NCBI GenBank assembly: GCA_950097015.1
Contig: CATNEN010000008.1
Coordinates: 3,286,001 to 3,350,000 of the forward strand
From: Macrostomum hystrix
Taxonomy: Eukaryota; Animalia; Platyhelminthes
Direction: 5' to 3'
Length of the DNA stretch: 64,000 nucleotides
Part shown: in pieces, positions 669 through 64,000 of the stretch
How positions within the stretch are numbered: the stretch's first letter is position 1
Layout of the letters: the number at the start of each line of letters is the position of its first letter
Translations under genes and position numbers: made by a program
The notes under the pieces: model-generated
Database searches by the model: none
What the model saw: the letters and a program-made list of their open reading frames with translations, nothing else
Told to the model about the DNA's origin: nothing

Positions 669-3291
669 TCATCGTTTTGGCTGTCGCTTATTAAGCCATT
701 GGTCGTGCTTGGCGTAGGCGGTGTCTAACAAGACGCGCAGGTGTCTGATCGCCTCCGGTCTCCGCTGGCCCAACGGCTGCACCCGATCCGAGTCCAGCTT
801 GGCCAGCGCAGCCCGCACTCGGGTTAGCTTGGCCTCCAGGGCAGCGCTGCTGACTGGGAAACAGGCCCAGTAGTGGCGCAGCAGCTCAGTGAGGGGTCTG
901 GCCAGCTCCCGGACCTCCTCCGCTTCCGAATCCTGCTGACGAGCGGCCGCTAGTCGACGGCTAACAACGCCAGACAGTCGGCCGCCAACCGAGAGATCTC
1001 GCAGCGCCTCCACCGCCTCCTCCTGGGTGCAGGCCGATGAAAGGCGAAGGTCCGACCAGGCGTCCAGATGGGCGAGGCTGCGAGAGCTCGCGCGGGACAT
1101 CTGCGAATGCGGGTGCCGGACTAAGGCTGATCAGGAATGGGTGTGGGGCTAAGGCTGATCAGGAATGGGTGTGAGGCTAGGGCTGATCAGGAATGGGTGT
1201 GGGGCTAAGGCTGATCAGGAATGGGTGTGAGGCTAAGGCTGATCAGGAATGGGTGTGAGGCTAAGGCTGATCAGGAATGGGTGTGAGGCTAAGGCTGATC
1301 AGGAATGGGTGTGAGGCTAAGGCTGATCAGGAATGGGTGTGAGGCTAAGGCTGATCAGGAATGGGTGTGAGGCTAAGGCTGATCAGGAATGGGTGTGAGG
1401 CTAAGGCTGATCAGGAATGGGTGTGGGGCTAAGGCTGACACACCTGAGATTCAGGCAGGCGAGCAGGCGGAGCACCAGAACCACCCCCACCGACGTCGTC
1501 AGCGCCCGCTTGCGCGGCAGGGCCGAACAGATATCGCTCGATTCGCTCCAAAGCCAGCGCATCCGCCGCCGCCGCGTCAGTTGAGTCGCCGTCGACAAAA
1601 TCTTCGCCACCGCCAGCGTCGCCCAGATCGTCGAATCTCGTGAGCTCGCGCAGTTTGCGCCTCTTACTGGCCAACTGACCGTCTGCGGCGCTATCGTCTC
1701 CGCCGTTAGTCGCCGACGTAGTGCCATTGGCGCCGTTTGCAGTGGAGGAGGAAGCGGCGGCTGCCGCAGCTGCTGGCTCAGACTGCAGCACCATGAGCGA
1801 GTGCTGATTGCATCGCCGAATCAGCTGCTGGCCGGCGCCCAGCGGACCGCCGGTTGACGAAGAAGGGCCGAGGATGGCGCCAGTTGAAGCAGGCTCTTCG
1901 TCGCGGTACGTGTCGGCATCGGCTAGGCGGGTGAGGTCCAGGAACACGTCAGGGGTGATGCGCTCCATGACCTGACGAAACGCAGCCTCGTCTTCGGCGG
2001 CGCAGTCGGCGAACACCTCGTCTCGGGCAACGTGCAGCCGGTCTCGGTGGAAATAGTGGCTCTGGAAGAAGCGCAGCCAGAACTCCTGCTCCGAGACAGT
2101 CTGCGGCACCAGCTGGGCGTGCTTCCGGCGCACAGCCGGGTAGGTCGCGAAGATGGCCTGGATGATATCGGCTGTCAGGCTGTACTTGAAGCCGCCACCC
2201 TGCGACACGGGCTTGATGGCGGAGAGGAAGTCGGCGCTAACTCCGGCTCGCTGCTGAATTGACGAGGATGAAGAAGGCGCAGAGGAGGAAGCTGAGGACG
2301 CTGGCGGCTGCTGTTGCTGCCTGTAGTTAATAATAATAACATAATAACATTAATAATTGCAGGAGAACTGCGAGCAATGGCACATCATTTAGTGAAACTA
2401 GACCCGCAGCCAGCGAGGAGGCAATTCTGCCCATTCTGCTGACTCCTGTGCAGACACTCGCACAGATACCGTACGCAGGCATACGCTTACACAGGTGTGT
2501 ACATCTGCTTTGACTTTCTCATCGTCAGGCAGTGTACACTTTCACTGTGCCTTGAAGTTTGGCACTTAATGGCGTAAATTGCATGACAAGCCCCCAAGCC
2601 TTCTCTCCGCGGCTGAGCCCCAAGTCAGTGAGGCCTCGCCGTCGAGCTCAGGGACCTTGGAGCGTGAGGCAAACGCGTTAACCACTCTGCCACTGACCCC
2701 TCTGCCTGCAGTTTAGGCGGAACGGAGGCGACACGCGCATGCCCAAGATGTCAATGCTTAATTCCCTGGTGATTCAGATATAGAATTTTTCAATTTTGAG
2801 TAAACATGTAGACGCACTCACTTAGGCTCGGCCGGGTGCTGGTATGTGGCCCAGAACTCATCGGCAGTCACTATGCCGCTGGGCACAAGGTCTTTGTAGA
2901 GCTGCAGCAGCTCAGGATTGCGCTCAAGCAGGCTAGTTTTGCCTTCGAATTCGGCGAATAGATTCTGCCGAAATCTGGGCAACAATTGCATTAGCAGCTC
3001 CTTGACAGCCTCCCGGTCCTTCAGCTGGTGCTCGTGACCGCCGGGGTTGCTGAACAGAAACGTCTCCTTGGCTCCGGAGTGCAGCTCAAGCTGCAGCTGC
3101 ACCTTTTCCTTCTTCATCGGTGACACCAGCTGAGCCTTCACATCCTGGTAGGCAACGGTGAGCTTGAGCAGGTCGCTGCGCTGGTTGGACCAGCCGACCC
3201 GAGTGGCCATCAAGTACAGAGTGCCCTGAGCAGTCTTGTAGCGGACGTGCTCAACACTCAGAAGGATCTCTTCGCCACCGCTGGACGACAT
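669..3291 (-). CDS. GTF2H1: General transcription factor IIH subunit 1 (TFIIH p62/Tfb1), 3 exons, about 592 aa
   Basis: Exons 3291-2822, 2320-1444, 1100-669 with GT/AG ends, phases 2/0, total 1779 nt. N-terminal PH domain (VRYKTAQGTLYLM, KEKVQLQLELH), BSD domains (LYKDLV..IVTADEFW; IFATYPAVRRKH..SEQEFWLRFFQSHYFH) and C-terminal LRHYWACFP match p62. Confidence 0.93.
1121..1440. repeat. 28-bp minisatellite filling GTF2H1 intron 2
   Basis: About 11 copies of CTAAGGCTGATCAGGAATGGGTGTGAGG; period 28 measured at 1121/1149. Confidence 0.95.
2326..2700 (-). mobile_element. tRNA-derived SINE family A, copy 1
   Basis: Minus-strand head GGGGTCAGTGGCAGAGTGGTTAACGCG (A box) with a degenerate B box and a (TTA)n tail. 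Homologous copies at ~21697, ~45770 and ~47771. Confidence 0.8.
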
Positions 3292-5176
3292 GGCGAGTGT
3301 GAGCACTAGCTAGCAGGCTCTTCCAGCTGCTCAGCCAGGTAGGACAGCCCCACTCCGCAGTGCTCAGACGTTGCCCAGACTGCAAGCTGCTACTAAGAAC
3401 TCTGTATTACACTTTAGAAAGCCTCAAAGACTTGCTGAGCTTTTCAAGTCTGAAATTTATTTAATTAAGTTAGGAGTTACTTGAGAGCTAAAATAAATTT
3501 CCAAAAACCAACCTGCTCCAATTGATCTATTAAAGATTTGTCTTAAACTCTTTAATAGCCTATATGTATTGAAAAACAAGTAGATTTTGACAGATATAAA
3601 TAAATAATAAAACAATATAAAACAATGGCTACATCAAATCTGCTGTTTGTTTTAAAAAATTAAGTCAAGAAATTTATAAACTTGGTAATATGCTCATAAA
3701 AGCTAAGTCTAGCAATTAAATGACTTGAAAGAGAAAAATTGATATATCATTAATAATTATATTGGCACATTACCTTTGACATGGTTTTCACACTTTGGTC
3801 ATATGAACCACACATTAGAGCCTTGACAGAAAAATATCAAGTTGGCACACAAAAGAAGGTACTTAAATAGGCAAGATTGTCCTAAATAAAAAAGCATAGA
3901 AAACTCCTAAGGTCTATCTAAATAGGCTTCTTATTTTCTGTTTTATCCATGATAGCTGATTAAAACATTGACCTAAAACCTAAATTATAATAATATTAGA
4001 TTTACAATCTTAGACAATTAGATTAAATTGTTACAGGTCGATAACATATAGTCTACAATGGGATAGTTTTTGAGATAGATGTGAGTTTTGTAGGGTCTAG
4101 GACAGGAGGTCAAGTCTTAAACTAACTAAAGTGTATTTTAAGATATATTTATCCATTTCTCTAATTCTCTGACTTGGTTTCCATTTGCTTTTTCTCCAAA
4201 TTAACACTAAAGGGTGGTCTGAAACTAAGTCAGAATTGAAGTTATTTAATGTAAACTATAAAATATAATAATCACATTTAGCTATTAATTGGGGCCTACT
4301 AAGTTACAGGCAACAAAAGAGAGGAGCACACCGACATGGCGAAATCTTGTTATATATAAATATTAATAATAATAGTCATTGACATTTAGAGCATAGCCAT
4401 AGGAAAACTGAAAGGGCAAAGCTGCAACCTATTTAATTGAACTGAATTGGCTAAGGGCCAGGGCGACAATTAAAAAAATAAACTATTCTCTTTTAGAAAT
4501 TTAAATTGAGTACAACAAAATGATTTGTACTGTAAAAGTTGTTAAAGCTATTTTAACAGAACAAATGAACTAGGCCTGGGACTTAAAAAGTATATTCCTG
4601 ACCAAAGTTCATATCGCAATATTAATCATGACTGAACAAAATAAAAACCTAACAACAAAAAAGGTTTTTACTATTGCATACTTATTTGACATTCGACGAC
4701 AGGCGACATGGCACGCTTGGAAAATATATGCGTTTTACAATGGTACTATAATGGCATGTAAAGTTTAACCTTAAACTATATGCCAAATAACTAACTACAG
4801 CAAACTATTGGGGATTGCAACTAAACATTTAAACGAAATGCATAATCAGTTTCTTTTTAGCAATATAAAAAGGCAACGGCTTAAATTTAAATGTAAAAGT
4901 TGTATTTTCGATCAAGGAAATTTTATAATTCGATTTTATAATTCGAAACGATTTTAAATATATAGTTTTGTAGTGCAAGCGTTTGTTTTACTTTGCGCAT
5001 ATTTACCTAAGACCATTCTGTTATTTTTCATGGTGACTTTCATTGCGAACCTCACTCCACAGAAGGAAAGAAGAAAAATGACAAGTAATAATAGCTCATT
5101 ACGACTTGAGTAACGTATATTTTTAACGTAGTCCTCGTTAAGCTTTTGCTTGTTTGTGCGTCCTGTTTTTTTCAAT

Positions 5177-10046: not shown

Positions 10047-12743
10047 ATGGCGAATCCTTATTGGTTCAAAAAGGAAAAGAAACAATTTAATCAATCCAAA
10101 ATAGTCAGCAATGATAGCCGACATACTCGCCCCACCTCCAGAATTGTCAAAGCCCTCACGCTGGACAAAATGTCCAAGCTTTCGACGGTGAGGAAGGCCG
10201 ATGGCCGACCCACCGAGAACCCTGGGGAAACGCTCGACACTATGCTCACAGCCTTTTTCCCCAGCGTGCCAGCAGGGACAGACCCCCCGGATCACACCGA
10301 GGGAGGTCATATCCTTGCGACGTCCATCATTACTGAAGACCGGGTTACCAAGGCAGCCCAGTCTTTCAAACCCTTCAAATCCCCGGGGCCGGACGGCATT
10401 ATACCAGCCTTCATCCGCGAGGCGGTAAAATGCCATGGCTTCCTCACAAATCTTTGCAAGCTCCTTAAGGCTTGCATTGTGCTTGGGTATGTTCCGAAGG
10501 CATGGACCGAGGCGAGGGTGGTTTTTATCCCCAAGCCAGGCCGCCCGGACTACCATTCCATTAAATCGTTTCGGCCAATTAGCCTTACCTCCACCATGGT
10601 CAAACTGATGGAGAGATTGGTGCTCTGGCGCCTCCTCTCTGTGGAGCTGAAAAATATGCCACTAAGCGGCAATCAACACGCCTTTCGGTCGGGACGTTCC
10701 ACCGAAAGCGCTCTCCACGCTCTGGTGGACGCTCTGGAAAAGGCCGTCCTCGGGAACGGCTTTGCCCTGAGCATCTTCCTGGATATTGACGGGGCCTTCG
10801 ACAACGTTCTCTTCGAGGCGTTTGACAGGGCCCTACGTATGCGGCACACGCATTCGCATCTTAGGAGGTGGATCATGTACATGGTCCGCCACCGCACTGC
10901 TACGGCACACCTTCTTGGACACCAGCGGACGGTCACTGTCTGCAAAGGTTGCCCACAAGGCGGCGTCCTCTCACCAGTTCTCTGGAACATGGTTATCGAC
11001 GAGCTCTTACGAGACTCTCAGCCAGACCCCATCCTAAAGGTCGGCTATGCGGATGATGTTACGGCAGTGGCATCTGGCCCGGTACCAGAGGCCCTCCGAG
11101 ACCTTCTGCAAAACTTTATCAACAACGCCGAAAGATGGGCAACTCGCTGCGGTCTGAAGCTCTCCGAGTCTAAGACAGCGGCGATCATGTTCACCAGCAA
11201 AAACAAATGGCATATTCGCCCCCTGCAGCTGTATGGAAAGGACATCACCTTCCAGAAGCAAACTAAATGCCTGGGCATAACGCTCGATCACAGGCTCAGC
11301 TGGACTCCTCATGTCCATGCCAAAGCCAAAAAGGCCTTTGCGATCCTGGCGCAGCTGCGCAGGGCGGTGGGCAACACGTGGGGTCTCACCCCCAAACGCC
11401 TATGGTGGATCTACACTGCTATGGTCAGGCCGGCTGTCTCGTACGCCGGACTGATCTGGGCTAGCGCCCTTCAGCTTAAGACCTGCCATGAGACTCTTCG
11501 GAGAGTGCAAGGTCGCGCATGTCGGACGATCATGAGCGCCCCGCCATCCGCCCCCTTCGATGGCCTCAACGCCTTCTTGAACATCCTCCCGCTCGATATC
11601 TTTATCCGCGGGGAGGCGGCAAAAACCGCCCGGCGTCTCCTTGATGCCGGTGTGCGCTTCGTCCCCCAACGAGCGGCAGCGAAGCGAAAGCTCCTGCCGC
11701 ACACGGACCTTTGCCTGAGAGACTTGGGTGCGAGCAACGGAATCAATGTCCTTACGGACGGTGAACCGTGCTCGCTCAACCTCCTTCAGCGCTTTAAGGT
11801 TCTCATCCCCACCAGGGACCAAGTTAGCGACCACTGGAACACCCAGGAGGTCCACTGCTACACGGACGGATCCATGAAGGATGGCTCCGCTGGCTTCGGG
11901 GTCTGTATCCTTATCAACGGACGTGTTGTCGCCACACACGCCCAACACACTGGAAAATCCTCGAGCGTTTTCCAGAACGAGGTCCTGGCCATCAGCTCCT
12001 GCGCTGCGGAGTTGAATGAGAAAAACATCTCAGGCAGGACTATCATCTTTCACTCGGACAGTCAGGCTGCTCTGCAAGCCCTCTGTCACACCACCACAAC
12101 CTCCCGGACAGTCTCCGACTGCGTCCGGCAGCTCAATAACCTGGCCGGTAAGAATACCGTCAGACTTCAGTGGATACCAGGGCACGCCGGTTTCCCTGGT
12201 AACGAGCTTGCTGACCACCTGGCCAAGCAGGGAGGAGCCAGCTCTGCGCCGGGCCCCTCCCCCCCGGCTCCGATTCCGAGCACCGTCATTTATCGTCAGA
12301 TTAATGATTGGACCGCCAACCTCCATCTTACCCGGTGGAGAAGCACCACTAACTGCCGCCAATCCAAAGCGGCAGTTCCAGTGCCATCCGCTCGGCTCCG
12401 GAAGGTCCTTCTGAACCAGACCCGGAAGGACATCCGGGCCCTCACCATGACCCTCACGGGCCATGGCTGCTACGCCAGACACTGTTTCCTCCGTGGAGAC
12501 CTCCGGAGTGAGCTGTGCCCTTTCTGCAACCTTGAGGACGAGGATGCCCTGCACTTCGTCTGCCACTGCCCTTTCTTCACCAGAGAGAGGCTCAATCACC
12601 TCGGACCAAACCCATCAATGGACGATGTTTGCAGATCCGAGAACATCCCGCGGCTCGTCCGGTTCCTAAGGGCTACCAGACGAGCCTCTTTCTTCCCCAG
12701 CGAGGAACAAGCTGCAGGAAGGACCGAACACGGACCTCCCTGA
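10047..12743 (+). CDS. Reverse transcriptase-RNase H ORF (898 aa) of the retrotransposon; first 26 codons come from flanking DNA
   Basis: Motifs KSPGPDG, FRPISL, QHAFRSGRST, LDIDGAFD, CPQGGVLSP, YADD; RNase H YTDGS..NEVLA..HSDSQ..WIPGH..GNELADHLAK; LTGH..CPFC..HFVCHC. Confidence 0.93.
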   Translation: MANPYWFKKEKKQFNQSKIVSNDSRHTRPTSRIVKALTLDKMSKLSTVRKADGRPTENPGETLDTMLTAFFPSVPAGTDPPDHTEGGHILATSIITEDRVTKAAQSFKPFKSPGPDGIIPAFIREAVKCHGFLTNLCKLLKACIVLGYVPKAWTEARVVFIPKPGRPDYHSIKSFRPISLTSTMVKLMERLVLWRLLSVELKNMPLSGNQHAFRSGRSTESALHALVDALEKAVLGNGFALSIFLDIDGAFDNVLFEAFDRALRMRHTHSHLRRWIMYMVRHRTATAHLLGHQRTVTVCKGCPQGGVLSPVLWNMVIDELLRDSQPDPILKVGYADDVTAVASGPVPEALRDLLQNFINNAERWATRCGLKLSESKTAAIMFTSKNKWHIRPLQLYGKDITFQKQTKCLGITLDHRLSWTPHVHAKAKKAFAILAQLRRAVGNTWGLTPKRLWWIYTAMVRPAVSYAGLIWASALQLKTCHETLRRVQGRACRTIMSAPPSAPFDGLNAFLNILPLDIFIRGEAAKTARRLLDAGVRFVPQRAAAKRKLLPHTDLCLRDLGASNGINVLTDGEPCSLNLLQRFKVLIPTRDQVSDHWNTQEVHCYTDGSMKDGSAGFGVCILINGRVVATHAQHTGKSSSVFQNEVLAISSCAAELNEKNISGRTIIFHSDSQAALQALCHTTTTSRTVSDCVRQLNNLAGKNTVRLQWIPGHAGFPGNELADHLAKQGGASSAPGPSPPAPIPSTVIYRQINDWTANLHLTRWRSTTNCRQSKAAVPVPSARLRKVLLNQTRKDIRALTMTLTGHGCYARHCFLRGDLRSELCPFCNLEDEDALHFVCHCPFFTRERLNHLGPNPSMDDVCRSENIPRLVRFLRATRRASFFPSEEQAAGRTEHGPP

Positions 12744-24388: not shown

Positions 24389-27300
24389 GGGTAAATCTCA
24401 CCAAGCAGCATCGGAATTTGTCCTCTTAAAAAATTCTCGAAAAAAACACATGTAATAGCTCTAAAATATTTATTTCCATCAACAGAATGTAGTTTGCATA
24501 CTAAAAGCACAAAATATTAAAGTCTTATGCTTGAAAATTACTTTTTGTTTTTCTGGAGAAACGTACATCACGACTGTTACAAATAAATTATAAATCGTCC
24601 TTTTAGCAGATATTATCGAATGGTATAACTAATTTGCACTTAAAAAAGACTAACTAAACCTTTTTGTTGCTGAAGTATTTTTTGATTACTAGTTTTTTTG
24701 TTTTTCTCCTTGATCTATGGACTCAATATTATTTAACGTTGGTAGTTCGCACAAGCTAATTATAACTTACATCTTAATTATAGCTATTAAGATGAAAGCA
24801 GATATGCCAACTCAAAGCCGAACAGAAGTCTTTTAGCTTAATGAAATACATTTTACCTCTGTTAGATTACATAGATAAAATCTTTCGAGAGAATATTATT
24901 GTTTGTTCTATCTGCAGAAAAAGATAAAAATCGATTTTTAAAAGAAAGTAACCATCCTAGATCCTATAGGCTATAGATGGAAGACTTTAGATTTTTCTGT
25001 TCTAAAGTGTAAAGCTGAAGCATAAGCTTTGCAAATGAATTAGTGAAATTATTTTATAGAAATTATAATGGTATTGAACAGAAGCGGGACAGAGTGATTA
25101 GAAAAATTATTAATTACATACAAAAATCGCAAAAGCAGCATATATATCCATAGAACAAATCAATGGAACAAAGTTTTCAGTTCTCTAGAAATTGAGAGTA
25201 TATTCAGAATATTGGGAATATTTAAAAGCAAACAACTAATGTCATTGTCTACTGATGATTACAAATAGAGAGAAGGGAAATGGACCTATAGTTCATGTTT
25301 GTGCTGAAGAAATCCACTATAAATGTGCTTTATGACATAAATCAAAATTGGACTTGTCTATCAATTAGACTGATATAAAACTGATATAAAATCTACATAC
25401 TGTACTAGGACATTCACTGCATGATTATGCTCAATAGATTCATTTATTTGGATAAAATAAATGCACGAATATAAATTACTATGAAACCCAAAACAATTTA
25501 CCTGTTTAAATATTTAAACAGGCAGCACCAGCTACGGAACGAGACTACACTCGTTGCAGGGAAAGAACTCTACGGGAAAGCCCCCGAGGAAAAATTTCGT
25601 AGACCTGGTGTAACCCATAAATACAAATAGCAGTGCTCATGTGTGACAAGTCTATGACATCATTTTTTCAGTATCGAAATTGTTATTTAAAATCATGGTT
25701 ATTCTACTAGACGCAAGAGACAGTTAACTTTCTCGAACGACACAGGCAGGTGTGCAATAGAAACTCGAAGGCACTGGAGTTCCGGGCTCAATGCCGATAC
25801 ACACGCAGTGGTACCAACGCAAGCATCCTTCGCACTCAATCCACGTGATGGTGCCGATTGGCTTTGAACAGTCGTCAGCCGCACACGAGTCACTCGCTTC
25901 AAAGCCACTTCGGCGGCCGCGACCAAGACCTCGACCACGACTTCGGCCACGACCTCGACCACGGAAACTGCCGCTACAAATGGAGCTTGATGATGGCTCT
26001 TGTGGCGGTCTAGGATTCCAATGTGCTGTACAAGAGCTGGTCGCCGTCACATGAAACATTGACCACAGCTTGGCGTCGTGACAGGGACAAGCAGGGTCTA
26101 TAGTGTCGCACAGGCAGGCAAGCTGCCGATAGATTAGACCCTTCTCATTGCGGCAAACGTGATGGGCCTTGGCGATTCCCAGCATCGGAGTCAGCTGCGT
26201 CAAAGAAAGAACAGTGCGGAACTCGTCTATCTGTGTCGGATCAATGAGGAAAAGCAGCACATTGATGGGTTTCCGTCCAGAAACAGCCGCCAGGACATCT
26301 TCCGGCTCCAACACGCTTCTACCGGTAGCCACCACCTCGTCACACCGCCGCTTAATAACTGCTCCAACGCCGTCTGCTGCACTTTTTCCATGTCCGGCTT
26401 CTGTGTACAGCCATTGCCACTTGTCAATTCCACGCTTTCGCAGCAGCCGATCGATGATGAAAACCGAAAATCGATTGCGATACTGACTGCTTGGGGAGTC
26501 TGAAATGACAGTGACTCTTTCTAGGCAACCTGGTGTCAACGTTTCGAAGTGGTTGAGTACAGGCTGCAAATGAGCGGCGACGGCCTCAGCTGTCTTTCTC
26601 CTATCTGCAGAGAGTGTCGCAAAGCAGCGTGGTGGCTGGTTGTACATGTACGCGACTCCTTGGTGGATGGTCACCTCCTTATGGGATCCGAAGTGCGCCC
26701 CCTGTGAGATGTGCATTTTAGAATATTTAAATTAGCATTTTCAATGCTATTAATTATTCGTCTAGACTTGCCATCCAATGCATCTGCCTCAAAGCATTAC
26801 CTCCTTATGCCTCCAACATAATTGTAGACGCTGACCACAGAATTAAAGCGACCCTATCAATATCTACAATTCGCCACACGACCATGACGCTAAACATTGA
26901 AATATTTCTCATTCACACCTGTATAACATGATTGCCCGCAGTGTTTGACACCAGTCCGTTAATAAGCGGTAATGAGCGTTAATAACTTAAACGAAACACC
27001 GTCATTCATTTCTATAAATAACGGAATATGTTTTTTGTGTTAGCGAAATTCTCTGTGAATGAGCTTAGCCAGGATTCCCATCTAAAGCCAATCAAAGACA
27101 GAGACTCGAAGCACATATTAATTTTTTTTCACCTGTACCTCCGAGCCGTGCTTGCCAAGGTAACTTTCAGAGAAATCGATGTGAATGACTAGATGTCCAG
27201 GTTCCAAATTCGATTTCACGTGCCTGATAGCTCGAAACTGGTGCCGAATTCTCATGTTATGTTGACAGAAGTGCCAGAAGTCGTCTATAAACTTTGCAAC

Positions 27301-29548
27301 AACGACAGCTCTCTCCTCCGTGACTCGCACTAATTCCATACCACAAAAGGCATCCGACTTCTGCAGCTTCCATGCGCGGTAGGTGATGCTCGGTCCTGTG
27401 GCAACAGCCTTGTTAATTGGCACTTTATCCCTGCACTTCACACACTTCTGCATTAGGCACTCTGAGTTATAGTCGGAGCACAGGACACGCTTCAACAACG
27501 ATAACTTGTTCGCTGCCGGCACCAACTTCTTGGCCCAGAGAGCTTTCACTAGAAGATCGAAGTTAGTGCACTCCATGCAGAGACACTGGTCACGATCAGA
27601 GAGCCGTGGACGCACAATGTGCCACGGGCGCCAGCGGTAGAAGGTCGCTCTGCTGACGTTGAGGTGCAGGTTCGGGTTCTCAGACAGAAACTTCGCGTAT
27701 AGCCCTTGTATACTATCCAGCAAGTAGCGTTTCTGCCTCCTCTGCTTCCGCATTGTGCACGTGTCCTTTTTAGATGCCGACGCTCGTGAGTTGTCATCGC
27801 GGCAGTAGAAGGCAGTTACAGTGCCGATTAGCGACGGCAGTCTCTTGCGTGCTCTATGTCGGTGCTGGTGCTTTTTCCTGTGCAGCGAAGCCTTCGCAGC
27901 AGATGGGACGGATGCAGATGCACTAGCAAAGCCAACAGTGCCAGAAGTAACAGCAGCCCGCTGTGATGTGCGTCGCCGATAGTCAGCTTTTTGAAGGCAG
28001 CTCAGCTGCCGTTTTAACTTTTCTAATTCGCTCAATTTTGCAGCGGCAGCAGCTTTTCGGCGGCAGGCCTCTCGTTTTTTGGCAGCCTCAGACTTAGTCT
28101 TCGTCCTTTTCGTCCTCGTAGGTTCAGCGTGAGCCTGCCGTTTAAGGTCGTTTACCTGCAGCCTCCTAAGCGACTCCGCCTCTGCGTCCTCTCTTGAAAG
28201 CCCATGCTGCCTATGTAATTGGCACTTTGTTACTAGGAAGCACTGGCGACGATGGTAGCCGTCAGGATCTTCCTTCAATTTCTGGGATCTATAGGCCCTC
28301 ATCTGTATACGACGCGTGGCTATTTTGCTTGGCATGCTCCTGCAACACGTGCAAAGCATGCATGAAAAAAAGTTATTTTTTATTTGCAATTTTTTTCTAC
28401 ATTTTCTTGTCTTACAAACTTACAAGTCTAGCTACATCCATTCCTTATGAATATGTATGCTGACAATGAATGTAGCCACGCTGCATCATTTATTAGCAAT
28501 GATAATAAAGTAATATTACAAGCTGAAGATAATTTAAAGATGTGTAGCTGTCCATGTTCATTTTTATATTCTCTTATAGCAATAAATGAAACTTGACTTT
28601 AAATTTCCATTCAATTCATAGGCTAAAAGTATCACAATATAAGAAAAAAATAATTTTTTGCAGCACACACAAAAAATGTAAGGTTTACTGCGTTACTGTG
28701 TACAAAAGTTTCATTATCTATATATCAGCTTTCAATTTGGTAATCAAATTCTCAATTATAAAGAGTCCTTGGTGCCATTATATGATTTATTAAACAAAAA
28801 AACAACTATTTTGCTACAACCGGTGTCACTAAAAAAATACAGTTACGTTATTCAAAGAAAGAATGGCAAAGGATCACGGGCCTATGACATATTGGCATTT
28901 ATAAATAGCAGAAAGGTCTTTATTTTCTTTGGATGCCTTGACGTGTGTGTTATTAAAGTCTGTTTTGTGCTCATAAAGCAGCACTCAATATATACATTAA
29001 TTAGAAATTCTTGGCTTACATTATATGTGGTGTGACAATTTTTTTGTCAAAGACTCTCCAAGAGGTTGTGAAGCTGTAAATAAAAACTATTGCGCATTTT
29101 AAAAAATTTCTCTTGTTTAATGCACTTTCAGATTGGTAATTTAGAAGAGCAATTTTTATTTAGCAATTTCGTATAAATGACACCGATGACTAATAACAGT
29201 AGAATCAAGTAATTTAATTAATGTTTTGTGGTAATCTAGTTTCTTCTCACATATTCCCGTATACATACTTTATCATTAGACTCGTTATCATTACTAATTT
29301 CCTGCCTAAAGTCCAAAATCGTGGCTCGGACACGCGTCGCTTATTAATTTTTCTGTTGAATTTTCGCAAAATGTGTCACTAATATCGAGCAGATTAGGAA
29401 AAATTAAATGCTTTGACATTAAAAACATCAATTTAGATTTTTAACAGTAAAAATATACCCATTTGACATTTACTTGCCGTTACATCAAAAGTACTGTTAC
29501 ATCTGCAACTTTGTTATAATCTTCGGAAATGCAATTTGAGATTTACCC
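24389..29548 (-). mobile_element. Sola2-type DNA transposon, apparently full length (5160 bp)
   Basis: Perfect 12-bp TIRs GGGTAAATCTCA (24389-24400; reverse complement 29537-29548) and 4-bp TSD ATAA (24385-24388, 29549-29552). GRG termini plus a 4-bp TSD fit Sola2. Encloses a spliced transposase. Confidence 0.85.
25724..28389 (-). CDS. DDD/E transposase (Sola2-like) with C-terminal PHD finger, 2 exons, up to ~744 aa
   Basis: Exons 28389-27133 and 26701-25724 join in frame as IHIDFSESYLGKHGSEVQ|GAHFGSHKEVTIHQGV; further motifs VISDSPSSQYRN and TEAGHGKSAADGVGAVIKR; PHD C..C..WIECEGCLRWYHCVCIG..FYCTPAC. Confidence 0.85.
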
Positions 29549-44657: not shown

Positions 44658-52483
<7,826 letters not shown>

Positions 52484-54529: not shown

Positions 54530-54930
54530 TTCCCAGTAACATTATCCAAAGGAAATCCTATTTATAGTATTCAACAAGGCAAAGTGGGATTTCATAGGGA
54601 TATCCCAGTTTTACGACAATACTCTGGAAACTAATTACGAATTTTCTAAATGGAATTCATGGCATATTCACACAGAACAGCTTTCTCATAGTATCCAAGG
54701 GAAATCCTATTTATAATATTAAACAAGGTAAGTCCCAATAAAATTATCTAAAGAAAATCCCAGTTTTTATCGAAGGAAAATCCCAGTGTTAGTATCCAAT
54801 GGATATCCCATTTTTGGTATCCAAGGGGAATCCCTTTTTGTATCCAATGGATATCCCATTTTTGGTATCCAAGGGGAATCCTATTTTTGGTATCCAAGGG
54901 AAATCCCATTTTTGGTATCCAAGGGATGTC
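54530..54930. repeat. Degenerate ATCCAAGGGGAATCCCATTTTTGGT-type repeats just 3' of the Patched stop
   Basis: Tandem ~23-25-bp units at 54790-54926 plus a duplicated ~140-bp block upstream. Confidence 0.75.
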
Positions 54931-54971
54931 GTTATTCAGCTCCTTTGTCACAGCTCACAGGGGGTGCCAAA

Positions 54972-55863
54972 TCACACGTGGCTGATCGGGGCGCCAAAAA
55001 ATCTACCGCTCGAGGAACCGCGCACGAACGGCGGAGGCGGGGGAGGTGGCGGCTGCGGCTGCCCAGGTGGCAGGTAGAGCCGCAAAGTAGCCGTCACCAC
55101 CTGCTGCTGCTGCCGATGTGGAAAGTGCGGGAACTGGTGAAACTGCGACAGGCGATGATGCTGAAAGGCTGCGGCGCTGCCCAGAATCGGCGGAGTTGCC
55201 GCCGGCGATGGCTCGCCGCCGCTCTCCTCTGGGATGGTGTCCAGCGATCGCTGGCTGGCCGTGTACGCGGCGGTGGCGGCAGCGGTGGCAACTGCCGCAC
55301 TCACAGCCGCTGATGCGGCCGCCTCCTGGTAGCTGGGTGGCGAGGCGCGCCTCCGGGTTGGCGATTCGTCCGACGATGACGAGGAGGACGAAGAAGATGA
55401 AGAATTTCGTCGGCGTTGCCGATGCCTTCGGCGTCGTCCGCGCTCGGGCGTCGGCTCATCATTTTCATATTCGTCGTCGTCGTCGTCGTTGTCATCATCG
55501 GCGAGTTCCTCCACGCTTGGCGACGCCCGCTGGCTTGACTGCGGCAGCTGACGTGGCGGCTTCGGCGACGGCGGCGGACGGAGCGGATGCGGCGGCAGGA
55601 GCGAGCGGCACGGCGCTAGCAGGCTGGCCAGCGACACTAGGGCTGCATTGGCCACTGAGGCGAGGAGGCCGGCCAGAAGGGGGCCGGCCAGGCAGGCGGA
55701 GAGCAGCGGACAGCCGGGGAAGGAGGGGGCGGCGAAGGCGGCCAGAGCCGGGGCGGCAGCCTGGCCGGCGGACCACAGGAAAGCCGCGAACGGCCAGTTG
55801 GGCTTGACCAGCTGCTGTCGAGTCCGGCTTCTCGCAATGTCGCCATCGTCTTCAGCGTCTGCT

Positions 55864-55896
<33 letters not shown>

Positions 55897-58800
55897 TGTG
55901 TCTGCTGACTGCGAGACCGGCAAGCCATGGGCAGGCGGGCAGCGGATGAGGCGGAGCTGGGCTGAGCAGTTGCGGACAGGCTCGAGTGCTGCGCGGGGTC
56001 AGGCGGGAGGGAGGCGTGCGTCTGAGCTCTGTTCTCAAAATATGCCGTGAGATTTTGAATTTTGAATGATTTTTAATACCATGAGAAATGTGGATCATGA
56101 GAAATAGGTGAGAGGATCATGAGATACAATTGAGAGGATCATGAGAAATATGAGAGGATCATGAGAAATATGAGAGGATCATGAGATACAATTGAGATGA
56201 TCATGAGAAATATGAGAGGATCATGAGATACAGTTGAGAGGATCATGAGAATGAGGTGAGAGGATCATGAGAATGATGTGAGAGGATCATGAGAATGATG
56301 TGAGAGGATCATGAGAATGATGTGAGAGGATCATGAGAGTGATGTGAGAGGATCATGAGAATGAGGTGAGAGGATCATGAGAATGAGGTGAGAGGATCAT
56401 GAGAATGAGGTGAGAGGATCATGAGAATGAGGTGAGAGGATCATGAGAATGAGGTGAGAGGATCATGAGAATGAGGTGAGAGGATTATCAGAGTCCTTGA
56501 GACTGATGACATTCCCAGTGGAGAACTCACAAAGACTAGCAGAAGGTTGACCAGGAACATGACAGGGAAGGTCAAGGCCACGCCGGTGCAGGTGAATAGG
56601 TTCAGCGACACCCCAGCAGCCCAGAGGACCACAGCCAGCTGCAGCAGGTTGATGAGGCACAGCGCGCTCTGGAAAAGATGAAAGAAATATCAATGAAATA
56701 GGTTCACTTTAATGCATGCTTGTCCCAATCAGCTGAATCAAAAAAGGCACAAAAACGCACACAAGCTACTGCGGGCAGTAGTTTCCAGAACACTGTCAGG
56801 GCAGCCAGGCAGGCCAAGGCCAGCAGCAGGGCAAGCAGGCCGGCCATCCTGCCAGGATCGATCCAGTCAGCGGAGTGGAAGTCAAACACTGGCCCGGACA
56901 CGCTGTGGATCAGGCCGTGCTGCAGGAACCGCCGGCTGATGTCCAAGATCCTGCCGCCAGCATCCAGGTAGGCCCTGGTGCTGTTCAAGCCTCTCAGCAG
57001 GATGACAGATTGCGCCAGCTCGATGTCTTTGGAGGCTGGTATGTACTGCAGTTCCGGCTGCCTGAGCTGCACCGTGTACTGCTCAGGCCTGGGCAGCAGC
57101 AGCCCGTTGGCCATCTCGAAGGACAGGCCGGACTGCGAGTACCAGCTGGTCAGGTAGGTGTAGAACATGCCCGGGTTGATGATTCCACGGCTGTCCACCA
57201 GCCTGCCACGGTCCAGCTGCAGTTCCGGGGTGTGGGAGCGGAGCTCAGTTTCTGATTAGCTATTCTATTTCCGATCCAAAACCTGCGAATCGCAATCTAT
57301 TTGCTTAAAATGTTTAAATCGCATATTCCTTTCGCGAATCCCAAATCTCCCATTCACCAATCTCCCATTGCCGTCCCGATCCCCAATCTCCCATTGCCGT
57401 CCCGATCCCCAATCTCCCATTCCCATCCCGATCCCCAATCTCCCATTGCCGTCCCGATCCCCAATCTCCCATTGCCGTCCCGATCTACAATCTCCCATTG
57501 CCGTCCCGATCCCCAATCTCCCATTGCCGGCCCGATCCCCATTCTCCCATTGCCGTCCCGATCTCCAATCTCCCATTGCCGTCCCGATCCCCAATCTCCC
57601 ATTGCCGGCCCGATCCCCAATCTCCCATTGCCGTCCCGATCCCCAATCTCCCATTACCGTCCCGATTCCCAATCTCCCATTGCCGGCCCGATCCCCAATC
57701 TCCCATTCCCATCCCGATCCCCAGCCTCCGATTCCCGATCAGAAATCCCGTCGCTCACCCCAGCCAGGTCAAACTCAGCGAACCGGCCAGTCTGGACAAG
57801 CAGCTGGGCAGCCAGAAGACCCTTCTCGGAGGCGGCCTCCGTAAAGTTCAGGCCGAACTCGCGCGAGCTGAGCCGCGGGCTGATGGCGCCGCTCCTGACG
57901 TCGGCGTCGAAACGCGCCTGCAGGCCGGACAGCCACAGGCGGAATTCGTTCAACCAGAAGGGGCTCCTCCAGCCGCTGCTGTTGCTGACGAAAGGCAGAT
58001 CGGAGAGCGCGTTGAACAGGCGGCGGCTGAGCAGCTGCTGTCTAGGATAGTCAATCTTCTGTAATTTTAGAGCCATGGGGCGATGCTAATCTGCCAGGAA
58101 CCTCACCATCTGAGTCTGAACCTCCCCATCTGAGTCTGAACCTCCCCATCTGAGTCTGAACCTCACCATCTGAGTCTGAACCTCCCCATCTGAGTCTGAA
58201 CCTCCCCATCTGAGTCTGAACCTCACCATCTGAGTCTGAACCTCACCATCTGAGTCTGAACCTCACCATCTGAGTCTGAACCTCACCATCTGAGTCTGAA
58301 CCTCACCATCTGAGTCTGAACCTCACCATCTGAGTCTGAACCTCACCATCTGAGTCTGAACCTCACCATCTGAGTCTGAACCTCACCCCTAATATAAAAA
58401 ATCTCACCCCATCTTTTCCGAGATCTCACCTACTATCTCAGCAATCTCACCCTTTCCTCAGCAATCTCACCCCTAAATCTCAGCAATCTCACCCCTATCT
58501 CTCAGCAATCTCACCCCTATCTCTCAGCAATCTCACCCCTATCTCTCAGCAATCTCACCCCTATCTCTCAGCAATCTCACCCCTATTCCTCAGCAATCTC
58601 ACCCCTATTCCTCAGCAATCTCACCCTCTATTCCTCAGCAATCTCACCCCTATTCCTCAGCAATCTCACCCCTAAATCTCAGCAATCTCACCCCTAAATC
58701 TCAGCAATCTCACCCCTATTCCTCAGCAATCTCACCCCTATCTCTCAGCAATCTAACCCCTAAATCTCAGCAATCTCACCCCTATCTCTCAGCAATCTCA

Positions 58801-61800
58801 CCCCTATCTCTCAGCAATCTCACCCCTTTTTTCTCCCTACAGTCCCCAGCCGCCTGACCTGGATCCGCAGCTGCAAGGCGGAGTCGCCGTACAGGTGCTT
58901 CCTGCTGGTGAGGAATCGGTACTCCTCGCTGCCAGCGGGCAGGAGTGCCACCGGATTGTAGTCGGCGGAGGCCGCCAATCGCCAGTAGCCGACAGCCCCG
59001 AGCAGGCAGGCCGATATGACGGCGACGCCGGCTGAAACGGCGGCCACTCGGCGAAGCCAGCGTCCTGTAACCGAGGACTGCAGGCAACAGCGAAGCAGCC
59101 GACGGTAGAATCGGCTGCCCAGGCTGTGGCCCAGAGACACCCGGGTGGAGGCCGACTCCCTGGCCAGCCGGCAGCAGACGAGATCGGCGCCGAGGCGACG
59201 CCGACGAGCCGAGTCAGCGGCGAAGACTGCGGGCAGGGCGGCCAGGCTGAACAGCAGCAGCTGCAGCGAGTTGGCGGCCCAGTGCCGGCAGAGGAGGCGC
59301 ACGGCGGACAGCGGGGTGAGTAGGGCGCCAACAGGGGCCGCCAGACACACCAGCAGGAAGGCCACGGTCTGGGGAGCCGTGCGCTGCATCAGGATGGGGA
59401 TGACGGCCTGCCCAGGTGGGGAGTGTGGGATTTTCTGAGTAAAATTCATATCCTTATTTTATATTGGGGCTATTTAATTGATCTTTCTCGTCTGAGGGGA
59501 CCTTTAATTGCCTGAGGGGATTTTTAACTTTCTGGGGGATTTTAGGTGACGGAGGGTGACTGAGGGGATTTTTAAGTGATTGAGAGGATTTTAAAGTGAC
59601 TGAGGGGATCATTCGTGTCTGAGGGGATAATTCGTGTCTGAGTGGATCATTCGTGTCTGAGGGGATCATTCGTGTCTGAGGGGATCATCGCGTCTGAGGG
59701 GATCATTCGTGTCTGAGGGGATTTTTAAGTGTCTGAGGGGATATTTAGTGTGAGTGAAGATACTAGACTTTACTGAGCTAGATCAGTTTAATATGATATA
59801 TAGTGTCAATTAGTTTTGTAAGTGCCTAAGAGATTCTCAATGTTCTAAATTGAGTTTTTACTCCTTGATAAAAGAGCTCGCTCACCCGATGCGCGCCCGG
59901 CTCGCTGGTCTGGTACAGGTGGTTGTAGCAGCTGGCCATGATTAGGCAATAGAATGCCCCAATTCCCAGGTGGACAAACGGTAGTACCTGCGGGATTGAT
60001 TTGTTAATTATTACTATTTCCTTTATTAATAAACTTAAAAGAAGATATACTATTCATCCCAGATTCTTACTAGGATTTTAGATCTTTAAATCCCAGGCAA
60101 TTAGTATCATATTTTGAATCTCAGATTTTATATACCTAAACTAAGTCCCAGATTCCGAATCCCAAATTCCAAATCCCAGATTCCAAATCCCAGATCCCAG
60201 AATCCTAAATTCTAAATCCCAGATTCAATACCCCATATAAAAAAATCAAAAATTGTATATCACCTATACTTATTATACGATTTTAAATCCCAGATTCAAA
60301 ATCCCAGATTCCAAATCCCAGATTCCAAATCCCAGATTCAAAATCCCAGATCCCAGAATCCTAAATTCTAAATCTGATATATATCGAATCCTAGATTTCA
60401 AAATCCCAGATTTTATTATTATTTTTTATTAATCCAAATCCCCGATGCTAAGCCCGCACACTCAGAATGCAGAATCCCCAGTTGCACCCACCTGCACGGA
60501 GAGCAGATCTAGCGGCACGCGGCACCAGCAGGCGAGCCCCAGGCCGCCAGTGACTGACAGCAGCAGCAGCGGCAGCGCCAGTACGGCCACAGTCAGGTGG
60601 CTGTGCAGCAGCGAGTGCGAGTCGAACAGGACAGCCATGACGTAGGCGCAGCAGCCCACAATCAGGAGGCTCCACTTGGTCCAGTGCACCGTTCGGGTGG
60701 CCCGCCCGAGGGCTGCGTTAACCGACTGCTGATCGTTGAAGGCGAAGAAGATCGGCTCCGGATGGCGGCTGTTCTCCTCGGCGACCACCTGCGGCGGCGA
60801 CAGCGACAATGGGGTTAATTCCAGCTGATAATGCAAATATTCCTAGAATTCCTGGAATCTACAAGTACATGAGCCTCAGTAACTGTGCACTGTGACTCCA
60901 GTACTCAGTTCGAAGTCAGATAATTCTAGTCTTGTTCGAATCCTAAGAATTGTAGTCCTAAGTTCGATTCCTTAGATTGTAGTGCAAAGTTCGAATCCTA
61001 AGATTGTAATCAAAATTTCGAATCCCAAGAATTGTAGTCCCAAGTTCGAATCCTGAGATTGTAGACAAAATTTCGGATCCCAAGAATTGTAGTCCCAAGT
61101 TCGAATCCTGAGTTTGTAGTCAAAAGTTCGAATCCTAATGCTGTAGTCCCAAGCTCGAATCCTAAGATTTTAGTCCCAATCTTAGTTCAGATCCTAAGAT
61201 TGTAGTGCAAAGTTCGAATCCCGAAAATGTAGTCAGAAGTTCGAGTTCCAATATTTAGTCGATGTGATTTTAAATCCCTAATTGTAGTCCAAAGTAGAAG
61301 CCCGAAATTTTAGTGTGAAGTTCGAATCCTCAAATTATGATCCCAAGCTCGAATCCTTGAGAGAAAAACTGTCTCAGTTTGCATCCAAAACAGAAATGCC
61401 ACACACACCTTGTGAAACTGCTCCCACCAGGCGTTCAGCAGTCGCTTAGTCTTATCCAGCGACCACTCATTCAGCGGCTGATTTGTTCTGTAGTCCTCAA
61501 ACAGATGCTGCGGACTCTTGAGTACCAGGGCGCTGAGCAGGGCCCCGCCGCTGAGCAGGCGTCCGCTGTCCGGGTCGCGGCTGACCCCGCCGATGAGCTT
61601 CTCGGCCGGCCAGCGAATCAGGCGCTCGGCGAAGCCCGAGCAGCCGTCAGTCAGGAACTGCAGGAGCCGGGCCGGGTCCGACCTGTTCCTGGCCGCTGGC
61701 GGGCACTGAGCGTCGCTGGGATCCAGGCAGGGCCGGCGAGTGTAGCCGTGATTCAGGCCGACGCTGCCGAGATCCCGGACTAGCTGCTGCAGGCGGGCAT

Positions 61801-63228
61801 GGCCACGCTGTGGCAGCTGGGAGCTCAAGGCATCTGTGTAGGCCTGCAGCATCGCCTGCGGATCCAGATTTGTCCACGAGTACGCCCTGTCCAGCTCTTT
61901 CATCTCGGCCGACTTGGGCAGACTGCTGGATGGCGGGACAGTGAGCGATTCGTTGGTGGGCGGGGTAGACAGAAAAGTAGGTAGGACGGTAGATAGGTAG
62001 GCAAGTAAAAAAGTTAAGTAAGTAGACAGGTAGATAGACGGTTGTGGGGTAGACAAGTAGGTAGGTAGACAGGTAGGTAGGTAGGTAGGTACGTACGGTA
62101 GGTAGGTAGGTAGATAGACGGTTTTTGGGTAGACATGCAGGTAGGTAGACAGGTAGACAGGAAGACAGGTAGGTAGGTAGGAAGACAGGTAGGTAGGTAG
62201 ACAGGTAGGTAGGAAGACAGGTAGGTAGGTAGACAGGTAGGTAGGTAGGTAGGTAGACAGGTAGACAGGAAGACAGGTAGGTAGGAAGACAGGTAGGTAG
62301 GTAGGAAGACAGGTAGGTAGGTAGACAGGTAGACAGGAAGACAGGTAGGTAGGAAGACAGGTAGGTAGGTAGGAAGACAGGTAGGTAGGTAGACAGGTAG
62401 ACAAGAAGACAGGTAGGTAAGTAGACAGGTAGACAGGTAGACAGATAGGTAGGTAGGTAGGTAGGTAGATAGACGGTTTTGGGGTAGACAGGCAGCTAGG
62501 TAGACAGGAAGACAGGTAGGTAGGTAGGAAGACAGGTAGGTAGGTAGATAGGAAGACAGGTAGGTAGGTAGAGGGTTGTGGGGTAGACAGGTTGGTATGT
62601 AGACAGGTAGGTAGGTAGGTTGACAGGTAGGTAGGTAGAGGGTTGTGGGGTAGACAGGTTGGTAGGTAGGTAGGTAGACAGGTAGGTAGGTAGGTAGACA
62701 GGTAGGTAGGTAGGTAGACAGGTAGGTAGACAGGTAGGTAGACAGGTAGGTAGGTAGGTAGACAGGTAGGTAGACAGGTAGGTAGACAGGTAGGTAGGTA
62801 GGTAGGTAGACAGGTAGGTAGGTAGACAGGTAGGCAGGTAGGTAGACAGGTAGATAAACAATTAGACAGGTAGGTCGGTAGAAGAATTAAGTTAAGCTTT
62901 TGTTTCAAATTTCAAAAGGTGATTTGTTGCACGGGCATTGGGCACTGTGTGGTATGTCAGCAGCAGAGCGGCAAAGCTGAGAATGGCCCTAAGCAACACT
63001 AGCTCAATAACTTCAGTTCGCTAATTGAATAGGCACTTTCTCTATATAACTGAAAGCTAAGCAGAGACTGAGAGAGCTATAGAAGAGCAACTAAGGCCAG
63101 ACACTAACTAACAATATACTGCCTACAATTAAGGGGAGAAGATACTTAACCAGCCAGCGCTCAAGTCCCGAATCGTGAGTCAGCCCAGTCCACCGAGCGA
63201 ACCCTCCAACCGAACTCAAAAATTTCAT
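54972..63228 (-). CDS. ptc: Patched (Hedgehog receptor) homolog, divergent; 5' end uncertain
   Basis: Exons 61925-61409, 60788-60492, 59987-59886, 59407-58859, 58058-57759, 57216-56761, 56668-56531, 56021-54972; tentative upstream exon 63228-63146. Patched-specific motifs [90 protein letters not shown], and PPSY in the tail. Confidence 0.88.
56092..56482. repeat. 22-bp minisatellite in a Patched intron
   Basis: GAGGATCATGAGAATGAGGTGA. Confidence 0.93.
57340..57722. repeat. 26-bp minisatellite in a Patched intron
   Basis: CTCCCATTGCCGTCCCGATCCCCAAT. Confidence 0.94.
58100..58825. repeat. Two adjacent minisatellites (20-bp CCTCACCATCTGAGTCTGAA; 22-bp CTCAGCAATCTCACCCCTATCT) in a Patched intron
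   Basis: Direct inspection, 58100-58385 and 58420-58825. Confidence 0.93.
59560..59745. repeat. 20-bp repeat TCATTCGTGTCTGAGGGGA in a Patched intron
   Basis: Tandem copies visible. Confidence 0.8.
60150..60412. repeat. AATCCCAGATTCCA-type short tandem repeat in a Patched intron
   Basis: Tandem ~14-bp units. Confidence 0.8.
60930..61358. repeat. ~27-bp degenerate repeat GTTCGAATCCTAAGATTGTAGTCCCAA in a Patched intron
   Basis: Tandem copies visible. Confidence 0.85.
61965..62880. repeat. (GGTA)n/(GACA)n compound microsatellite
   Basis: About 900 bp of mixed GGTA/AGAC/GGAA tetramers; creates the spurious N-terminus of ORF 61310..62908. Confidence 0.97.
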
Positions 63229-63744
63229 TCATATATTTTCTAGCTACGGCTTAAAAGGGCTTTATTTGATAGCCAGAGCAATAAAGGTTCAGTAAGTATA
63301 ATTGCAGACTACAGTACAGACCCACCACACCGCTAAATTTTATTTTTTCAATCTCTCTCAGATACCGAAAAGGCAATCCAACGCTGGAGCCAAGACCTCT
63401 GCCCCACGCCACACAGGGGGGGGTTAGCTAGCAATTCGGATGAATCATACAAAATGTTTGTGCCTCCTAGGAAATTTCGGGTGACTAAGTAAGACTAAGT
63501 CTGCCCTGCCCCTTGTGTTCATTCATTAGCCAGATACCTCACACACACACACCTGACAGACTGACCGGGAAGATTAATAATAAATGGTTCAGAGATTTAG
63601 GAATTAAAACGGGGATTTAAATTTGGGTCGAGTAATTACGATTTTGATCTACCTAAAATTGAGAGATTACAGATTACTGAGCATAGGATTAAAAATCTAT
63701 CAAACATCAGCATTTGGGATCTAGTGATTTATTATCTATGGATT

Positions 63745-64000
63745 CTGGATTGAGGATCAATGGATTGGGGATTAAGGGATTTGGGATCAAGAAGTTGGGG
63801 ATCAAGGGATTTGGGATCAAGCGGTTGGGGATCAAGGGATTTGGGATCAAGGAGTTGGGGATCAAGGGATTTGGGATCAAGGAGTTGGGGATCAAGGGGT
63901 TTGGGATCAAGGAGTTGGGGATCAAGGGATTTAGGATCAAGGGGTTCGGGATCAACGGATTGGAGATTAAGGGATTTGGGATCAAGGAATTGGGATCAAG
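63745..64000. repeat. 15-bp G-rich minisatellite (GGGATCAAGGGATTT / GGGATCAAGGAGTTG), runs off the window end
   Basis: Direct inspection; produces the LIPNP/LIPNS repeat ORF. Confidence 0.92.

Follow-up and report, generated by a model that had tools for sequence, protein, structure and literature searches.

Patched repression of Smoothened is still debated in terms of cation-driven cholesterol transport via an acidic triad in transmembrane helices (TM) 4 and 10, and in PTCH1, the triad acids coordinate the driving cation. What, then, is a Patched protein kept for when the triad is gone? This question is raised by a stretch of 64,000 nucleotides (nt) from the flatworm Macrostomum hystrix (contig CATNEN010000008.1, positions 3,286,001 to 3,350,000; the whole stretch is called the window, and positions are counted within it). 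On its minus strand, the window carries an intron-rich, multi-exon Patched gene in which all three acids are missing. Gene structure, expression, the absence of the acids, the pattern of constraint, and placement with flatworm Patched are shown by the analysis. The reading that we favor, and hold to be probable if by no means certain, is that the gene is the flatworm Patched ortholog, with its cation-coupled pump dead or rewired, kept for the functions of its ectodomains and tail.

The loss of the triad is complete. Specifically, in an L-INS-i alignment of 54 Patched proteins, including the one studied here, the columns of PTCH1 D513, D514, and E1095 are occupied by F, Y, and M, and the conserved His that follows E1095 is replaced by Asn. 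Hydropathy segments extend the observation to the entire membrane bundle: D and E are absent from every TM core and occur only at helix ends (D228, D266, and D370, in the numbering of the partial protein). An earlier note on this DNA, made from its letters, had reported that all three TM4 and TM10 acids are lost, and the alignment bears this out. Two routes by which acids could be recovered were considered. Relocation of acidic residues within the TM bundle can be rejected on sequence grounds, from the hydropathy segments and their acid-free cores. Restoration by alternative splicing or RNA editing is ruled out by a search of every reading frame across 54-64 kb, which revealed no exon that could supply an acid-bearing segment resembling TM4 or TM10, together with the transcript contigs described below, which differ from the window at 0 bases of the TM4 exon and at 1 base of the TM9-TM10 exon, a synonymous change at 56591.

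In PTCH1, the substitutions D513Y and D513A/D514A abolish both the reduction of accessible cholesterol and the block to signaling (PMC8654371). The M. hystrix protein resembles these mutants in lacking the TM4 acids. It differs in that the mutants are single lesions in a canonical background, whereas in Macrostomum the whole triad has disappeared naturally, the change is fixed in at least two species, and the TM bundle as a whole has diverged with it. With TM4 and TM10 both free of acids, cation-coupled transport has plausibly been lost.

The gene spans approximately 54975-61924, and its 5' end lies past the window edge: TM1 and the first half of extracellular domain 1 (ECD1), that is, the 5' quarter of the gene, fall outside the window, and no GC-rich exon 5' of 61924 is visible in 62911-64000. 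The in-window coding sequence consists of eight exons with 1124 open codons and ends at a stop codon at 54972-54974. All eight exon lengths are divisible by 3, each intron falls between codons (phase 0), and all introns are GT-AG. GC content is 66% in the coding sequence, 79% at its third codon positions (GC3), and 44% in the introns. From 5' to 3', the exons are the following (aa, amino acids).

61409-61924, minus strand: exon for the C-terminal half of ECD1, with motifs WTNLDP, GCSGF, and WWEQFHK; the donor GT at 61408 is clear, and the candidate 5' acceptor is at 61925, 61922, or 61912.
60492-60788, minus strand: exon for the end of ECD1, TM2, and TM3; 297 nt, phase 0, defined by splice sites, alignment, and spliced contigs in sequencing runs X2, X3, and X4.
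59886-59987, minus strand: exon for TM4; 102 nt, with GIGAFY in place of GxGxDD and both joints found in three runs.
58859-59407, minus strand: exon for TM5, TM6, a short cytoplasmic loop, TM7, and the start of extracellular domain 2 (ECD2); 549 nt, the loop being approximately 40 aa long and without PPxY.
57759-58058, minus strand: first ECD2 exon; 300 nt, containing LLVQTGRF and supported by spliced contigs and alignment.
56761-57216, minus strand: second ECD2 exon, with TM8; 456 nt, with a phmmer match to PTCH1 in the PDB (E 2.8e-9) and spliced contigs.
56531-56668, minus strand: exon for TM9 and TM10; 138 nt, zero charged residues, joints in X2 and X3.
54975-55988, minus strand: last coding exon; its TM10-TM11 linker is interrupted by 48 aa of low-complexity sequence, TM11 and TM12 are degenerate and rich in Ala and Leu, and the motifs PPSY and SLDTIPEE lie in the C-terminal tail.

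Transcript evidence comes from contigs of runs X2-X4, three runs of one sequencing study. These runs are not recorded as RNA; we take them as RNA because splice joints are present and introns are missing, with zero depth in intron interiors. Specifically, contig depth is zero inside four large repeat-filled introns (58059-58858, 57217-57758, 59408-59885, and 55989-56530), and the study contains 37-47% of the sampled words of 54950-60900, approximately the exonic share. The contigs hold seven joints, at which the skipped parts read CT..AC on the plus strand and hence GT..AG for the Patched gene. A single contig of 3027 nt spans seven of the exons, and an X2 contig (record 9) reaches approximately 1066 nt 5' of 60790. 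The contigs are interrupted at a GC-rich repeat in the last exon (55850-55906). The two exons on which the earlier note's reading depended, 59987-59886 and 56668-56531, are spliced as it had predicted, with joints 59987/60492, 59886/59407, 56668/56761, and 56531/55988, all GT..AG. As a separate observation on the last exon, the region encoding the linker insertion and tail (55640-55990) contains many poly-Ala, poly-Ser, poly-Asp, and poly-Pro runs.

Is the product truly a Patched protein? In phmmer searches of the PDB, the ECD1 exon matched PTCH1 chains only (E 4e-18), as did the second ECD2 exon with the E value listed above. The sole PDB match of the TM5-TM6 exon (58859-59407) was NPC1L1, at a non-significant E of 0.27. 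No better similarity was found to other sterol-sensing domain (SSD) families, namely NPC1/NPC1L1, Dispatched, and PTCHD/Ptr; in the PDB, the ectodomain exons matched nothing but PTCH1. When the ECD1 exon was searched exhaustively with HMMER against 1.84 billion representatives of deposited proteins, 92 proteins were returned, of which 30 could be named, and every one that was named or aligned is Patched-type. One protein in our collection, P0048, is a GC-rich Patched ECD1 fragment that we traced to a 987-nt contig. By hydropathy and alignment, the hydrophobic segments TM2-TM12, eleven of them visible, follow one another in the expected order, with ECD2 between TM7 and TM8. The ectodomain cysteines, which had been described as conserved from the letters, are indeed kept in the alignment. 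The tail carries PPSY, and the middle-loop PPxY is absent; PPxY is described as a cytoplasmic sorting and E3-ligase docking motif of Patched (PMC4080449). The tail motif SLDTIPEE aligns with SLTTITEE of oyster and SLSTISEE of liver fluke, so the M. hystrix protein shares the SLxTIxEE motif of protostome Patched. The product is a true Patched-type protein.

The membrane region is harder to recognize. The SSD region (TM2-6) can be aligned to canonical Patched at only 21-22% identity. None of the eight exons, translated singly, gave a Patched or SSD match in Pfam, the models of which need more than one exon, and a word search with exon 58859-59407 gave no relatives, though it likewise missed the window's own open reading frame (ORF). 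Compared with vertebrate PTCH1/PTCH2 and canonical invertebrate Patched (oyster, nemertean, and coral), the M. hystrix protein is alike in its PTCH-type ectodomains with conserved cysteines, its TM2-12 topology, and its tail PPxY. It is unlike them in having F-Y-M for D-D-E, a less conserved TM bundle, a short middle loop, and the 48-aa TM10-TM11 insertion.

Which Patched is it? In a maximum-likelihood tree (LG+G4, 50 rows, with the M. lignano fragment, one Paragonimus model, and two partial rows omitted), the M. hystrix protein and neodermatan Patched (tapeworms and flukes) are sister groups, with a Shimodaira-Hasegawa-like approximate likelihood-ratio test (SH-aLRT) support of 99. The same sister placement is obtained, with SH-aLRT 98, under a site-heterogeneous model (LG+C20 with posterior mean site frequencies, PMSF; 37 rows). 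The tree alone would be weak; we accept the placement because the TM10-TM11 insertion is shared. Specifically, this cytoplasmic linker is 68 aa long in M. hystrix and 52-131 aa in 11 of 11 neodermatans, versus exactly 20 aa in 36 of 40 non-flatworm Patched proteins (three rows have 21, two truncated rows are shorter, and none exceeds 21). The non-flatworm sample covers coral, echinoderm, vertebrates, molluscs, nemerteans, crustaceans, insects, mites, and tardigrade. The neodermatan set comprises tapeworm proteins P0035 and P0234-P0239 and fluke proteins P0007, P0010, P0022, and P0240-P0246.

The neodermatan orthologs also bear on the triad. In the alignment, flukes have D-S/G-R, and tapeworms have E-G (or G-D) plus K. 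Since neodermatan triads are also non-canonical, the triad change belongs to the flatworm Patched lineage. The pairing of an acid in TM4 with R or K at the TM10 E1095 position suggests, as one possible arrangement, that a salt bridge within the membrane takes the place of the cation site in these proteins. Neodermatan Patched (Echinococcus, Taenia, Schistosoma, Fasciola, and Opisthorchis 'patched 1') is thus like the M. hystrix protein in tree position, linker insertion, and non-canonical triad. It is unlike it in retaining one TM4 acid (D or E) with K/R in TM10, whereas M. hystrix is uncharged at all three positions and has more diverged TM blocks.

These results bear on the alternative that survives best, namely that the gene is an extra, lineage-specific Patched paralog (a decoy, sink, or dominant-negative partner) beside a canonical, acid-bearing Patched elsewhere in the genome. 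A very long branch, such as this gene has, is typical of a released duplicate. However, the ECD1 search of the deposited representatives gave, among the 30 named of its 92 matches, one Macrostomum protein, A0A1I8FQU1 of M. lignano, and this is an ortholog of the M. hystrix gene with the same F-Y. Moreover, the gene has the flatworm linker insertion and is sister to the sole Patched of the neodermatans. A separate search with tapeworm Patched gave matches limited to neodermatans and non-flatworms. We regard an additional paralog as rather unlikely. The earlier note had depicted a transport-dead special paralog and a potentially new component of the Hedgehog pathway. Of this depiction, the loss of pumping survives as a reasonable inference from the acid-free TM4 and TM10; the special-paralog status is not supported, given the grouping with the only Patched of tapeworms and flukes and the shared linker insertion, and neither is that of a new pathway component, given that the neodermatan orthologs are likewise non-canonical in the triad. 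The sink, decoy, and dominant-negative roles may be entertained as hypotheses.

Does the membrane bundle still bear the marks of a working pump? Between M. hystrix and oyster Patched, identity is 29% in ECD1 and 28% in ECD2, versus 22% in the SSD, 12% in TM8-10, and 21% in TM11-12. Between fish and oyster Patched, the corresponding values are 41% and 47% for the ectodomains and 65%, 61%, and 70% for the membrane blocks. Constraint is therefore inverted relative to canonical Patched: the ectodomains are better kept than the TM bundle. Such an inversion is expected if the pump has been freed from selection and the ectodomains have not. Within the genus, TM4 itself is kept: the TM4 exon is identical to A0A1I8FQU1 at 26 of 34 positions, with the same G-I-G-x-F-Y, and the single His of M. 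hystrix TM4 is Gln in M. lignano. A0A1I8FQU1 (P0001), the sole ortholog in the database, is annotated as a 'DUF1725 domain-containing protein'. Its model is 490 aa long, runs out of frame in places, and lacks a TM2-3 segment; it was compared only over its in-frame parts, and its irregularities are probably an annotation or assembly artefact, not a broken gene.

Patched proteins of other animals show that D-D-E is not universal. The alignment contains Patched with one acid in an Anopheles mosquito (D-H-G) and a sawfly (H-D-H), and altered triads with one acid each in several mites and in ladybird and mayfly 'patched' proteins. Zero-acid Patched occurs in a Fragariocoptes-like (eriophyoid-type) mite clade, in the tenuipalpid mite Brevipalpus, and in the tardigrade Paramacrobiotus. 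The complete losses in mites and tardigrade appear to be independent. In this survey, the sample of which is biased by having been collected with a divergent query, zero acids are rare but not unique to M. hystrix. Zero-acid mite and tardigrade Patched proteins share with it the loss of all three acids and differ in belonging to unrelated lineages and in having the standard 20-aa linker. In one of them, the eriophyoid-type mite protein P0005, constraint is inverted too (ECD 41-44% versus TM 19-26%). The earlier note's premise of a triad general to Patched needs correcting, given the mosquito, sawfly, fluke, and tapeworm sequences.

Two side results concern the mite proteins. Among named proteins, the nearest relatives of approximately 40 Patched proteins (P0002, P0004, P0005, P0014, P0102-P0133, P0141, and P0069) come from Fragariocoptes and other acariform mites, and those of the 40 that were aligned are zero-acid. 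P0002, P0004, and P0005, the best full-length matches, were considered as flatworm proteins and rejected, as a search with P0005 gave acariform mites as its named relatives.

It could be argued that the protein still transports actively and still represses Smoothened, coupled through other residues or serving as a passive sterol conduit, such that the missing triad is of little consequence. We consider this improbable. In its favor, natural one-acid Patched proteins exist, an acid is paired with a base in flukes and tapeworms, hydrophobicity is retained in all eleven visible TM segments, TM4 is conserved within the genus, and planarian ptc acts as a repressor, as discussed below. On the other side stand the absence of D/E from every TM core, the replacement by Gln of the lone TM4 His, the inactivity of the PTCH1 triad mutants (PMC8654371), and the fact that the TM blocks are the least conserved parts of the protein (12-22% identity), the inverse of an active Patched.

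Several points nonetheless weigh against our favored reading of a flatworm ortholog with a dead or rewired pump. First, the Anopheles-type Patched has one acid, and as a functional dipteran-type Patched manages with one acid, the triad is not all-or-nothing. Second, unconventional coupling or a passive conduit is possible. Third, planarian Patched is a pathway repressor by RNA interference (RNAi), as cited in PMC5153250. Finally, the end branch of M. hystrix Patched measures 2.1-3.4 changes per column and its composition is skewed, and the protein may have been drawn to the other flatworms by long-branch attraction, against which the shared linker insertion speaks.

The gene is transcribed, correctly spliced, and under purifying selection. 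Ten coding differences separate the X2-X4 contigs from the window, of which 8 are synonymous and 2 non-synonymous, when 73% would be expected to be non-synonymous by chance (binomial P=7e-4). The claim that the reading frame is intact is upheld: no stop or frameshift interrupts the 1124 codons over eight exons. A decaying or transcribed pseudogene, which the earlier note had raised as a refutation of its reading, is very improbable: fast evolution, low-complexity inserts, Ala-rich degenerate TM11-12, and single exons that Pfam models fail to recognize would suit it, but the open frame, the canonical splice sites in use in the spliced contigs, the synonymous excess, the GC3 of 79% against a 44% GC background, and the retained ectodomain cysteines and tail motifs contradict it.

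What could a Patched protein of this kind do? On the favored reading, M. hystrix Patched could no longer be driven as a cation-powered sterol pump, and selection would retain its membrane-anchored ectodomains, for binding of ligand and/or sterol, together with a tail bearing the PPSY endocytosis motif. The protein may then act by binding and internalizing ligand, or by binding a partner, instead of by catalytic depletion of sterol. The features that point this way are those that were kept, namely the 12-TM anchor, the two ectodomains, and the PPxY tail, which suggest that the activity retained is either to bind ligand or sterol and then be endocytosed, or to bind a partner. We infer both the loss of pumping and this ectodomain- and tail-based mode of action.

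Patched-family proteins of Caenorhabditis elegans offer a partial analogy. PTC-3 and PTR-18 function in a lineage that lacks Smoothened and are kept for roles beyond classical Smoothened repression. Specifically, PTR-18 is a sink that clears a Hedgehog-related protein via endocytosis (PMC8104386), and by analogy it could serve as a precedent for a sink role, although there the role is motif-dependent. Both proteins still need intact GxxxDD and GxxxD/E motifs (PMC8104386 and PMC3078328), whereas the flatworm protein has neither.

A further step, which we offer tentatively as a possibility, is that in Macrostomum, and in altered form across the flatworms, the sole Patched works without a cation-driven sterol pump. 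It would be a natural separation-of-function receptor, with its Hedgehog- or sterol-binding ectodomains and endocytic tail held by selection and its transporter core released. The status of Smoothened is relevant here. According to a 2026 preprint (10.64898/2026.07.29.741434), most flatworms have a single Smoothened ortholog, which is missing in Stenostomum and in M. cliftonense; on the same account, M. hystrix retains Smoothened. If the absence in M. cliftonense holds, the pump could have been lost after its target, Smoothened, had weakened or disappeared. Were a pump-free sole Patched to prove true, it would imply an ancestral, pump-independent Patched function strong enough to maintain the gene.

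A triad-free, expressed, and selected Patched is a natural separation-of-function variant, one that marks which parts persist in the absence of pumping, namely the TM4 helix, the ectodomains, and the tail with its PPxY. It also indicates that the "invariant" triad is more labile than the vertebrate literature suggests, since the triad is non-canonical in all sampled flatworms and lost in mites and tardigrade. In the literature searched, we found no published description of triad loss in flatworm Patched and no functional description of zero-acid mite or tardigrade Patched. Macrostomum is tractable in the laboratory, as RNAi and transgenesis are available in M. lignano.

Finally, the surroundings of the exons carry repeats, which are listed here as one feature.

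54755-62853, no strand assigned: minisatellite arrays, a distinct one per intron plus the 3' flank, at 56092-56492, 57357-57737, 58098-58387, 58436-58827, 59556-59751, 60146-60374, 60934-61255, and 62048-62853.

The minisatellites of the Patched region (54755-62853 and 63747-64000) have periods of 14-27, and up to 100 copies are present at 62048-62853. The arrays 58098-58387 and 58436-58827 adjoin within one intron and contain GGTGAG-like units shortly downstream of the true donor. Beyond the Patched gene, inspection of the ORF list by eye suggests an MCM-type helicase gene, a TFIIH p62-like gene, an 898-aa long interspersed nuclear element (LINE) reverse transcriptase/RNase H ORF, and two large transposon-like ORFs, with coordinates noted at 48157-52483 (plus strand), 669-3306 (minus), 10047-12743 (plus), and 25724-28389 (minus). 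The MCM-type helicase gene lies immediately downstream of Patched.

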